Assembly: GCF_000315625.1 (NCBI RefSeq)
Contig: NW_005434572.1
Coordinates: 215,389 to 265,613 of the forward strand
From: Guillardia theta CCMP2712
Taxonomy: Eukaryota; Protista; Cryptophyta
Direction of reading: 5' to 3'
DNA: 50,225 nucleotides
The translations under genes were made by a program, and so were the position numbers. Below, piece after piece: positions 8,839 to 49,914 of the stretch. Every line of letters starts with the position of its first letter. Position 1 is the first letter of the stretch. The notes under the pieces are model-generated. The model saw only the letters and a list, made by a program, of their open reading frames with translations. It had not been told where the DNA came from and ran no database searches.

Positions 8839-10648
8839 TCAGCGCATCCTGGTCTCTGCAAGTACCGCGGTTGGTGCCAGCCCGTATTCCTCCAGCAGAA
8901 CCTGCATCTTGCCACCCCCGTCCACGTTGCTCCCGACCAACTGCGAACCGTGAGGATCTCGGGGGAGATGGAGGAGGAGGATGGAGAGCGAGAAAGTGCA
9001 GCATTGTAGTCTAACGACTCACCTCCACGAACTCCCCGTAGTCGATCTCTCTTCCAAACATCTTCAACAGCTGAAACCTCCAGGCTCAGTGTCTTGTGCT
9101 AATAGGCAGATGCCAAGACCTTATCCTGTAGTTTCTCCATGGCTCGCTTGCCGTACCTCCTGTACAGGATCTCCAAACACTCGTCCTCGTCTATCGTCCC
9201 GCCCGCATCCTTCCAACCGCGATCAGCACACGAGGCTCAGCAAGCCTGACGAGTCCCCATGATGCTCAACACTTGCCTTATCGCACATCATGAAGTCGAT
9301 CAAGTTGAACAGCCGGCGAGGCTCCTGACGTGAGAGATGGAGTCAACGTTTGAAGACGACCCCTTGCCCTTCAGACCTTCGACTTCTTGTCGCAACGTGC
9401 TCTTCCGTAGAGGAGGACAAAGTTTTCCCAATCTATCATTCCATCGCCATCTTCGTCCGTTTCCCATATCATATCTTCCACTTCACTGTACCAAGTGGAA
9501 CGAGACAGGTTAACAGATTATATGCTCAATGATACAAATCAAGGAAGAAGACGAAAACCTGTTGCCGAAGTCTGTGATATCCTGGGAATAGAAATATCAA
9601 CCTCTCTTCGCAACCATCCTATCTACGTCTATCACACCTGCGGCTCGTATTCCAACCTCTTAAAACAAGCTTTGAGATCGCTCGGCCCAATCTTGCCCTG
9701 TGAGAGGATCCCATGAGAGGGTTGACAAGACAGAACAAAAAAATTCCTTCTTTTCTCTGTCTAGCTGCCCAAAAACTCTCTGTGACAAACAAATGTCATT
9801 CAGCGATGTTGCTGATAAAACATGTGGGTAGCTCGCCTGCAAACTCTCAAGGTCCAATCGTGTGATCCCATACTTCTCCTCCCACTCAGTCTTCAACTCT
9901 ATATGCTCTCCCCGCGCACTCTCAATCATTTTTTCCTTCCTGGTTGAAATGGGTCAAGATGACGCCGCAAGGAGACGCAGGCAGGATGACAGGATAAGAG
10001 ACGGGAGTTTTGAGCTTCTTCTATGGCAATGGCCATGAGGAAGACGTGGGTAGATCGAGGCGAACAAGGAGGACAAAGGAGGACAAGGACGAGGTGGACG
10101 ATGACGAGGACGAGGACGAGGAGGATGACGAGGACGAGGACGAGGAGGATGACGAGGACGAGGACGAGGACGAGGACGAGGACGAGGACGAGGACGAGGA
10201 CGAGGATGACGACGAGGACGAGGACGAGGACGAGGACGAGGACGAGGACGAGGATGACGACGAGGACGAGGACGAGGACGAGGACGAGGACGAGGACGAG
10301 GACGAGGACGAGGACGAGGACGAGGACGAGGACGAGGACGAGGACGAGGACGAGGACGAGGACGAGGACGAAGAGGGGTCTACCGCTCTCTGCATTGCAT
10401 GCCAGCACTGATTCCCTTCACTCTCGCCGATAGCATCCCCAACGGCCCATCCGAATCGAAGCCTGCCCGCATTTCAACCGCTCTGTCAAGTGATGACTAC
10501 CCCACCCTCTACTTGTTCTTCAGTACCCCCTCCCATGTAGGCAGGAATCCCTCTGTTCACACCCTTCGTTACTACCCCCACCCCTCTTCATGGGAACACC
10601 GCTCTCGATCCCTCTTGTTTTGGTTTGTTCTTCATAGCGCTCAGACAT
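8839..10648 (-). CDS. Calmodulin-like multi-EF-hand protein
   Basis: Spliced EF loops LDREKK|GKIGPSDL, ETDEDGDGMIDWENF and CDK|DAGGTIDEDEC, plus EVEDMIWE and EPRRLFNLIDFMM. The model needs two GC-AG introns and one GA-AG intron; the 5' exons are uncertain. Confidence 0.8.
10100..10372. repeat. (GACGAG)n hexamer microsatellite, intronic
   Basis: Long near-perfect array that produces the spurious poly-DE, poly-S and poly-VL ORFs. Confidence 0.95.
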
Positions 10649-10696
10649 TTTGACATGAAAGGACGAGAGGCAGAGGAAGGCGAGGAGATGATGAGC

Positions 10697-10985
10697 TTGA
10701 CTTGATCTGACTTGACCTGACCTGACCTGACCTGACGTGACTTGAGTTGACCTGACTGACTTGACTTGACCTGACTGACTAGACTGACTTGACTTGACTT
10801 GACTTGACTTGACTTGACTGACTTGATTGGACTTGACCTGACTGGACTGGGCTGGGCTGGGCTGGACTGGACTCACTTGACTTGACCGGACTGACCTGAC
10901 CTGACCTGACTTGGTTGGACTAAACTGACTGGACTTGATTGGACTGGTTTGGACTGGACTAGACTGGACTTGACCTGACTTACAT
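10697..10985. repeat. Degenerate pentamer satellite (GACTT/GACCT/GACTG/GGACT)n
   Basis: Visible directly. Confidence 0.9.
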
Positions 10986-47552: not shown

Positions 47553-47829
47553 TTTCAATCATCTCAATCTGTGTGTTGAGTATCGACAGCAAATATCATG
47601 AATATGGCAGTACATTCAGATCTGAGAGATAAGTTGAGACTAACAAAATGCTCTTGAACGAGAATTTCTCATACTCGACAACTCATAATTCGATTACAAT
47701 CATTCTGAAATCATTAAGAAAAACATCTAATACTCTCTCGGCTTCACAAATTCTTTCAAGAAACCCACAACAAATTACAAACGATTCGCGATCACATTCA
47801 AATCACAAAGCTCGTACCACGGCTGTTTC

Positions 47830-49914
47830 TTAATAGGCCATGAACGTGTCTACGTACGCTTTGCCCAAAAACGATCGTCCAATCACACTGCAACGTACGA
47901 GATCAGTACCTCAAAGCCAATATGCAGGTTGACAACCTGGTCTTTGGAGCATTTTCTGCGCCAATCATCTGAATGACAAGGTCATATTTGGTGAACACTT
48001 CTTCGATCAGAATTACATCAAGTGTCTCCTGCGTCAGGCGATATCTTCCGTCTTCGGGGAGTCGTTCCATGACAGCAATCCCGCAGTTTGGCGGGTTGTG
48101 TGTGGCCTCGAATTGCTCGACACTCCACTAACGATGCAGCTCAAAGTCAGAAGTCTATGTTGCTGGTCAAGCGAATCACCTGAAACCATCGCATCAAGAA
48201 CAATCGGAGCGCCAACCCGTGCGTGATGATAATCACATTTGAGCCCTCCTGTTTGGATGAGTCAGGTCGTTTAGGAGGCTTCGATTTTGAGGTAGGGCTG
48301 AGACAGAAAGGGCACACATCTTCAAGACCTGTAGATGATCTCTACGCAAAGTGCCGATAAAGCCTGAAACCCTAATGTACACGTCCAAGCCTGCTTCTCC
48401 ATTTGGGAAGCGATAAAAAAATCTTCCAAATTTGCTTCTTTCATGCCTGTAATGATCAATTAAGAACAAAAAATCAAAGACACAGCAATCCAACTGACTT
48501 ATTTTGTCGAATGGTATTGAGATTCTGCAGGTTTCCAAACTAAACAGCATTTAGCAACCGAATTTGTCAATCATCGTTAAATTACTTGTTGCTCAGCGAT
48601 TCGAGGTTCCTCGCGCAGGCCTTGAATCTTGAGCCATGGCATCGCATCATGTGTTTGCAAGCATGTAACATATGCAATAGATTACCTGCTCATAATCTAG
48701 AGCTTGAATCAGCTGCCGACAAGTCTGAACTGCGCGTTGATAAGGGCTGTGATACACGTATACTGGTTCTTCTTTGACCTTGTCAGTAAAGTCAAATATA
48801 TACCAACACTAGATTTGGATTCGTTACAATCTCTTTGATTTTTGTCCCTGCGTCCCATGCCTGCCATTCCATCAAATTCACGCATTCACTGTGGCTTCTT
48901 GACCTGTCGCAAGCCTCGAGGATTGAGAGCAATCTTCCAATCTGCTTGATGATTAGGAGACTTGATTGGTCAACACAAAACATTCCTGGTATCTGAGTGT
49001 AGAGAATTTCTTGAGTATTACCCTCTGATTCACCATGCCGTACTAAAATTATTCGTTTCGGTCGTGGCATCTGTGAAGAGTAAGTGAAAAGAACGAACCC
49101 TAACCGTTCACCGCCGTCAATGAATTCCGAGTCGGCATTGAATGAGGTAGTGGTTTCAATCTCTGAATAGACATGTGCCCATTTCTTTGGGAGAACTTGT
49201 CAAAGTTTGAAAGGCCCTTCGAGTCTTCTAGATTTATAGCGCTCGATGATGTTGGAACCTCTGCAGAGGACGAACAGATTGAAAGAGGTTGGCAGGTACT
49301 TTGTGCACTGAGTATTGTTGACGGAGACATTGCTGTACATTCTGGCGGAAAGTGATAATGATCTAGGGGCTGAACAATACTTAATTTGCTTTCAAGAGCA
49401 AGAATTTTCTTCTGTTCTGGACAAATTTGACCCTTCACATCATTATCGCTGAAGTCGATGTGGTCAGTTGGACCCGACGATGTTGGAAGTGATACTAAGT
49501 TGACGTTTCTGGTCTTGCGGTGCCCCCTTGAAAATATTCCTGTCCATAGATTCCTGGAATAAAGATGTCATTTACGAGAGATGGCAAATCAAGATTGCAC
49601 GCTCGAGCTACACCCCCCAGGGACCCCGCATTCTGAGACTCTCGATCAAGTCGATGAGAAACAAACTAGTCAAGCAAAATGATCGAACACAACATTGAAA
49701 AGTGTAGCAACAACCCCCAGCTCACCGTGTCGAGATTGAACAAAAGGAACGCATGACAAAGTGCAATTTTCTTGTGCAGCCCTGGTTTAGTCAGGTTTGG
49801 GGTTTAGGATTTAGTCAGGGTTTAGCCTAGAATTTAGGATTTAGGTGGACAAGCCTGAAGGACCGACTGCGCCGGGGTGGAGATGAGGGAAGATGATGAA
49901 GAAGAGGAAGACAT
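47830..49914 (-). CDS. Histidine phosphatase / PGM-like protein (Det1/AT74 type) with probable N-terminal extension
   Basis: PKRIILVRHGESEGN, SPYQRAVQT, REEPRIAEQQ|FGN, FGRFFYRFPNGEAGLDVY, IITHGLALRLFLMRWFQ|WSVEQFE. The core is 47830-49070; exons 49112-49914 are less certain. Confidence 0.85.
49785..49847 (+). repeat. Degenerate interstitial telomere-like repeats
   Basis: ggtttagtcaggtttggggtttaggatttagtcagggtttagcctagaatttaggatttagg. Confidence 0.65.

Follow-up and report, generated by a model that had tools for sequence, protein, structure and literature searches.

GA-AG Introns in a Cryptophyte Alga: Two Transcript-supported Cases and One Probable Case in Guillardia theta

Sequence and Borders of the GA-AG Introns

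The stretch of DNA analyzed in this study, 50,225 nucleotides (nt) of the nuclear genome of the cryptophyte alga Guillardia theta CCMP2712 (contig NW_005434572.1, positions 215,389 to 265,613, referred to as the window), contains three sites in three unrelated genes at which an intron appears to begin with GA and end with AG. The introns at sites 2 and 3 are genuine GA-AG introns that are removed from the mRNA, and the same is probably true of site 1. It is very likely that all three are ordinary U2-type spliceosomal introns with a GA 5' splice site and that an unmodified major spliceosome accepts them by virtue of good flanking sequences. Site 1 (positions 9746-9698, minus strand, 49 nt) reads gaag/GAATTT...cacag/ggc, where the slashes mark the intron borders, and lies in an unannotated EF-hand gene (gene 1). 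Site 2 (36899-36947, plus strand, 49 nt) reads taag/GAATAG...tccag/atg and lies in gene 2, which encodes a CRAL-TRIO/PH/RhoGAP/TPR protein. Site 3 (48985-48942, minus strand, 44 nt) reads ccag/GAATGT...agcag/att and lies in gene 3, which encodes a putative histidine-phosphatase of the PGAM-like type.

The coordinates, lengths, and flanks that an initial annotation of this DNA had given for the three introns were all reproduced from the window sequence. The exonic AG, intronic GAAT, and CAG acceptor that it had described as shared are common to sites 1, 2, and 3, and the intron lengths, which it had considered typical of the region, fall inside the range of the 23 RNA-verified GT-AG introns of the window (41-172 nt, mostly 43-58). 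As in the GT-AG neighbors, a YTRAY branch-like motif is present in the GA-AG introns 10-30 nt upstream of the acceptor. The initial annotation had also stated that sliding the junctions gives no GT or GC donor, and a full enumeration of the cuts compatible with the joined sequence agrees at all three sites. The possible cuts are AG..AC, GG..CA, GA..AG, and AA..GG at site 1 (enumerated by hand), AG..CC, GG..CA, and GA..AG at site 2, and GA..AG, GG..CA, AG..GC, and CA..AG at site 3; none of these has a GT or GC donor. Of the cuts shared by sites 1, 2, and 3, GA..AG alone retains both G at position +1 and AG at the 3' end.

An assembly gap at 18373-18472, inside a (TCC)n tract, is more than 8 kilobases from site 1 and more than 16 kilobases from gene 2. 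The host genes (9099-9929, 34716-37513, and about 47900-49800) each consist of uninterrupted sequence and none of them crosses the gap, which therefore has no bearing on the GA-AG introns. Another run of N is located between about 5000 and 5300.

Removal of the Introns at Sites 3 and 2 from the mRNA

Four public runs were mapped onto positions 44000-49900, yielding contigs from X1 (study P1, 2019), X5 (study P4, 2015), and X14 (2011). Transcript contigs of both X1 and X5, which belong to different studies, join position 48941 directly to 48986 and skip exactly 44 nt, a segment that is CT..TC on the plus strand and GA..AG on the strand of gene 3. Nine GT-AG introns of the gene are defined by the same contigs. 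When the exons are joined, the product is an intact open reading frame (ORF) of 247 residues that contains RHGESEGN, the sequence ...YTQIP/DWKIALNPRG..., EQQFGNLQ, and ITHG. The contig from X14 is unspliced over 48663-49100 and has 0 differences from the window; since it is identical across site 3, it confirms the GA from an independent set of reads.

Gene 2 (34716..37513, plus strand) has 10 exons and nine introns, of which eight are GT-AG and one is GA-AG, as defined by the spliced mapping of a JGI transcript contig (L011, 2302 nt). The contig aligns to the window in 10 blocks from which exactly the 49 nt of 36899-36947 are absent. The gene has Pfam matches to CRAL_TRIO_2, PH, RhoGAP, and TPR. 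A protein of 701 residues from MMETSP Transcript_13881 (P0122, A0A7S4J800_GUITH) reads ...NAQNYIK/MGLIYESLGEADQ/AKEIY..., and its junction, NYIK/MGLIYESLG, is also found in a second MMETSP isoform (P0232) and in a JGI/IMG protein (P0235). P0232 has 722 residues and a C terminus unlike that of P0122, which suggests that the last intron of gene 2 is alternatively spliced.

The public genome model of gene 2, XP_005823915.1 (P0231, GUITHDRAFT_165627), has only 630 residues and ends in ...NYIKE. It runs through the GA donor into a TAG codon and thereby loses 71 residues, including the last TPR repeats. The prediction that annotation restricted to GT and GC donors would mis-model such genes is borne out by this truncated model, and gene finders with this restriction will leave the host genes of GA-AG introns truncated or mistranslated.

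The initial annotation had proposed that the junctions be read in transcripts and the base at +2 be verified in raw genomic reads. Exact skipping is seen at site 3 in X1 and X5 and at site 2 in L011, P0122, and P0232. The GA dinucleotide is present at site 3 in the X14 contig and at sites 1 and 2 in four genomic contigs from relatives (L012-L015). These contigs come from the ENA metagenome project PRJEB17505 (runs ERR2281808 and ERR2281809) and are 92-96% identical to CCMP2712; because the two samples also differ from each other, comparative work can draw on one or more close Guillardia-like strains or species that are as yet unsequenced. At site 2, the relatives' contigs L014 and L015 (95-96% identity) keep AAG/GAATAG.

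It could be argued that the junctions are artefacts that arose from sequencing error at +2, from template switching by reverse transcriptase at short AG or CAG repeats, or from misassembly of contigs. Two to three nt are indeed identical at both borders of each junction, and the RNA evidence consists entirely of assembled contigs, not of raw reads. We consider such an origin highly improbable because the same site 3 junction occurs in independent studies (2019 and 2015), the site 2 junction occurs in separate assemblies (MMETSP and JGI), and GA is present both in the independent, unspliced X14 contig and in the genomes of relatives. Moreover, an ORF and a conserved motif are recovered in every case when the intron is deleted, and the removed pieces have a branch motif like that of their neighbors together with a CAG acceptor.

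A perfect inverted repeat of 530 nt (37540-38069 and 38492-39021, 100% complementary, with a 422-nt spacer) begins 27 nt past the end of the gene 2 transcript, and the relative's contig L015 enters its left arm. The repeat may represent a foldback element, or it may have arisen in the assembly.

Site 1 and the EF-hand Gene

Gene 1 (9099..9929, minus strand) is modeled with seven exons that encode 158 residues. Its six introns are, in order, GC-AG, GA-AG, GT-AG, GT-AG, GT-AG, and GC-AG, so that three of the six are non-GT (one GA and two GC). The predicted GA-AG intron (9698..9746, minus strand, 49 nt) splits the first EF-hand loop, and its predicted removal yields the loop DREKKGKIGPSD. The exon at 9377-9484 matches Pfam EF-hand_1 and EF-hand_8. 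One of the modeled GC-AG introns, with the donor cag/GCGAGC (9780..9836, minus strand, 57 nt), lies inside what the initial annotation had taken as the first exon. In the window this segment is in frame and stop-free and hence exon-like, but within it the reading frame is interrupted by a TGA in L012 and shifted by a net +1 indel in L013, so that in the relatives it can only be an intron. The other GC-AG intron, with the donor aag/GCAAGT (9210..9276, minus strand, 67 nt), is required by the reading frame, and its donor GCAAGT is kept in both L012 and L013. A long triplet microsatellite of the GTC/GAC type, open in all frames, occupies 9930-10470, directly upstream of the gene.

The two relatives entered the analysis through a search of a representative protein library with a two-row profile built from one exon each of genes 1 and 2 (E-values expected from a local test, about 1e-32 and 1e-12). 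For gene 2 the search returned P0122, and for gene 1 it returned ORFs of 38 and 44 residues from the relatives' genomic DNA; the genomic contigs that carry them, L012 and L013, are about 92% identical to the window and colinear with 8470-10142. Only under the six-intron model is an intact 158-residue ORF present in the window, in L012, and in L013, with a protein identity of ~97%. Between the window and L013, exons differ at 14 of 477 positions and introns, with about threefold higher divergence, at 32 of 347 (p=0.0002), and all 12 indel columns in the gene 1 alignment fall inside modeled introns. The intron at site 1 taken by itself differs at 6 of 49 positions (12%) as compared with 14 of 477 (2.9%) for the exons (p=0.007). 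Both relatives keep the AAG/GAA donor and the CAG acceptor at this site. On this comparative evidence, there are good grounds to regard site 1 as a GA-AG intron.

The principal competing interpretation applies to site 1 only and was not considered in the initial annotation. A GT donor, gttct/GTCTTG, lies in frame 15 nt downstream of the GA and is kept in both relatives; if it were used, the real intron would be a 34-nt GT-AG intron at 9731-9698, the protein would gain the five residues EFFCS, and gene 1 would be without a GA intron. Such an intron would, however, be shorter than all 25 RNA-verified introns in this region, the minimum being 41 nt, and EFFCS would separate residues 5 and 6 of the EF-hand loop. 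Furthermore, the 15 nt in question have three variable sites in the three genomes, all of which would be non-synonymous if the GT donor were used (EFFCS, ESFCS, and EIVCS), as compared with a divergence of ~3% in exons. We therefore regard the 34-nt intron as unlikely and retain the 49-nt GA-AG intron in the model of gene 1.

Searches for expression of gene 1 gave negative results. A protein search found no product in the size range that was searched, and gene 1 is absent from the results of the profile search except for the two genomic ORFs of the relatives. Metagenome scans with patterns from its exons (E2 and E4) found no transcript contig in a collection that possibly has no records close to G. 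theta. When transcript-derived proteins were looked up by exact match, none of ten ORFs from the window had an entry in the collection queried.

Spliceosomal RNAs and Donor Context

The small nuclear RNAs (snRNAs) of the major spliceosome, which the initial annotation had suggested should be inspected for compensating changes, are canonical in G. theta. U1 is encoded by three tandem genes that are identical over the RNA and have the canonical 5' end ATACTTACCTGG; a search of the genome with the first 28 nt, allowing up to 3 mismatches, found no further U1 copy. The ACAGAGA box of U6 and loop 1 of U5 are also canonical, and no compensating change was seen in U1, U5, or U6.

The flanks of the GA donors are more uniform than their +4 position. 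AG at positions -2 and -1 and A at +3 are found in all three GA donors and also in the orthologous site 1 and site 2 donors of the relatives. Among the 23 RNA-verified GT donors, AG at -2/-1 occurs in 8 and A at +3 in 9. With the GT frequencies as the null and independence assumed, the chance of three GA donors all flanked in this manner is, by our own arithmetic, ~0.003. The shared GAAT of the initial annotation is accurate for the three sites in the window but does not hold as a rule, since the orthologous donors of site 1 in L012 and L013 are GAAAGT or GAAATT, with A rather than T at +4; GAAT is thus not required, and from the sequences compared here the constant part of the donor is AG/GAA.

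These features suggest how an unmodified major spliceosome might tolerate A at +2. The flanks of the GA donors are unusually good, and positions -2, -1, +1, and +3 of AG/GAA could pair with the canonical 5' end of U1. The pairing would consist of four pairs around one A-A mismatch or, if A7 of U1 bulges, of five contiguous pairs. The GT donors of the same genes, by comparison, would need nearly no flank consensus. No specialized U1 would be involved.

Two other explanations concern the machinery rather than the junctions. According to one, the introns are of the U12 type, spliced by the minor spliceosome and having odd terminal dinucleotides. Their donors, GAATTT, GAATAG, and GAATGT, lack the RTATCCTT consensus, none of the three introns has a TCCTTAAC-type branch site, and the genome search gave no match for U12 or U6atac, a blank that in itself is a weak negative. 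Some G. theta introns were classed as minor-like in a published survey, but the same survey reports no minor snRNAs in this organism (PMC11347168), and we attach a vanishingly small probability to a minor-spliceosome origin.

According to the other explanation, the pre-mRNA is edited from A to U at +2 before splicing, so that the spliceosome sees GU. We know of no A-to-U editing system described for nuclear pre-mRNA, and the strict AG/GAA flank rule is predicted by compensation through U1 and not by editing. RNA editing has been listed as a possible explanation of GA-AG introns (PMC7072748); for G. theta it appears extremely improbable. Recognition of the GA sites by the unmodified major spliceosome is the reading that we prefer for all three introns.

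Several points nevertheless weigh against this reading. The evidence for site 2 comes from MMETSP and JGI/IMG assemblies that may share raw data, possibly the same reads, and we have treated them as a single source. For site 1, the protein and transcript searches gave no RNA support, and an in-frame GT alternative exists. Raw RNA reads from a further run (X21), of which 6% was read, have zero depth over site 3. The snRNA searches score the best candidates only, so that a divergent variant of U1 could be missed. Finally, the pairing with U1 is inferred from five or six donors and by analogy.

The initial annotation had further proposed that the spliceosome of this genome routinely accepts +2A donors that follow an exonic AG. 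Acceptance is shown by RNA at sites 2 and 3. As to "routinely," none of the other introns in these and neighboring genes is GA (0 of 28, comprising 23 RNA-verified introns and five modeled in gene 1). Loosely, the GA-AG rate is below roughly 10%. A scan of the window in which ORFs were joined by donor dinucleotide was rejected as an estimate of frequency; it gave 600-2500 candidates for every dinucleotide and had no specificity. In our estimation, patterns of motifs alone are too poor in information for a class of 1-3% to be told apart from background.

The nuclear genome of G. theta has roughly 130,000 introns. It is conceivable, and we put this forward tentatively as a proposal that may well fail, that GA-AG introns form a regular minor class of at least 1% of them, spliced by the unmodified major spliceosome under a strict AG/GAA rule that is independent of that in copepods and tunicates. 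If this were true, it would point to a latent capacity of U2-type spliceosomes generally, and hundreds or more of the public G. theta models would be wrong.

Gene 3 and Its Neighborhood

The coding region of gene 3 (47903..49070, minus strand) specifies 247 residues, including the RHGESEGN histidine-phosphatase motif, and is interrupted by eight coding introns. Two further introns, both GT-AG, lie upstream of the ATG at 49071-49111 and 49554-49725 on the minus strand, and the ATG is the first codon past the acceptor at 49071. A weak match of exon 1 to His_Phos_1 is the sole database support for the family, and a protein search with gene 3 found no match; the conserved motifs in the translated sequence suggest that the product is a histidine-phosphatase (PGAM-like) protein. 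One contig from X5 (3004 nt) spans both a DnaJ-like gene (45706-47887, plus strand), which has an intron at 47467-47520, and the phosphatase gene (47850-49552, minus strand). Because a single contig covers both of these convergent genes, the 3' ends of their transcripts probably overlap around 47850-47890.

Comparison with Known Systems

The closest published parallel to the G. theta introns is provided by the copepod Eurytemora affinis and the tunicate Oikopleura dioica and is closer than that of the dinoflagellates. GA-AG introns of these animals have an AG/GA+A logo, outnumber GC-AG introns, and account for 3.2% of supported splice sites in one species (PMC7072748). The donor features of that logo, the exonic AG and A at +3, are present at all three sites in the window; every G. 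theta GA donor has the same AG/GAA, here in a cryptophyte alga. For E. affinis, an isoform of U1 whose 5' end is altered has been proposed (PMC7072748). In G. theta, in contrast, the three U1 copies are identical and canonical, and the variant-U1 idea is therefore unsupported in this organism.

Several other occurrences of non-GT donors bear comparison. The human FGFR GA 5' splice site is efficiently used and reportedly dependent on a canonical site 6 nt upstream (cited in PMC7072748). It resembles the G. theta sites in being used by the major spliceosome and in needing a favorable context, but it is an isolated case, and no canonical site lies 6 nt upstream at the three G. theta introns. The nucleomorph of Lotharella has one GA-AG intron, a sporadic occurrence (PMC4035089). 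GC-AG introns, the commonest non-GT class, are tolerated if the rest of the donor fits U1, and gene 1 is modeled with two of them (GCGAGC and GCAAGT). They differ from GA-AG introns in having C rather than A at +2 and in being modeled by standard gene finders, which do not model GA-AG.

The initial annotation had drawn its parallel with dinoflagellates, whose non-canonical introns have been described as having a G after the 3' AG. The base that follows the acceptor in G. theta is G at site 1 and A at sites 2 and 3, so that the dinoflagellate-type G is found at one of three sites only. In addition, the G. theta introns are about 45-55 nt long and nearly all GT-AG. The parallel is sound in that non-GT donors are used by an otherwise U2-type system in both, and abundantly in dinoflagellates, but it is a loose one. 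In Symbiodinium, GA-AG introns are frequent, and S. minutum has up to 65 of them per dynein gene (PMC5100056).

No report of a GA-AG intron in Guillardia or other cryptophytes was found in a search of 8.4 million texts, a set that does not cover the genome paper (10.1038/nature11681). G. theta is a new lineage for a known type of intron, and all of the sequence-level features of the class are present in it. The present analysis adds the conservation of GA in relatives, the canonical snRNAs, the AG/GAA rule with its parallel in animals, the truncated public model, and the unannotated gene.

Implications for G. theta and the Spliceosome

G. theta is the reference cryptophyte genome for the study of secondary endosymbiosis, and its gene models were built with GT and GC donors. 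Under such models, each GA-AG intron leads to a truncated protein or to the insertion of false residues. The window provides instances of the consequences: one model is short by 71 residues, and the EF-hand gene, whose predicted structure includes two GC introns besides the GA intron, is missing from the protein collections that were searched. More generally, G. theta brings to four the distant lineages whose major spliceosome takes A at +2, once more solely where the flanks are AG/GAA and in this case with a canonical U1. The combination of a canonical U1 with AG/GAA argues for compensation by the flanks rather than for a dedicated snRNA, and G. theta is a small, culturable alga in which flank compensation may be tested.

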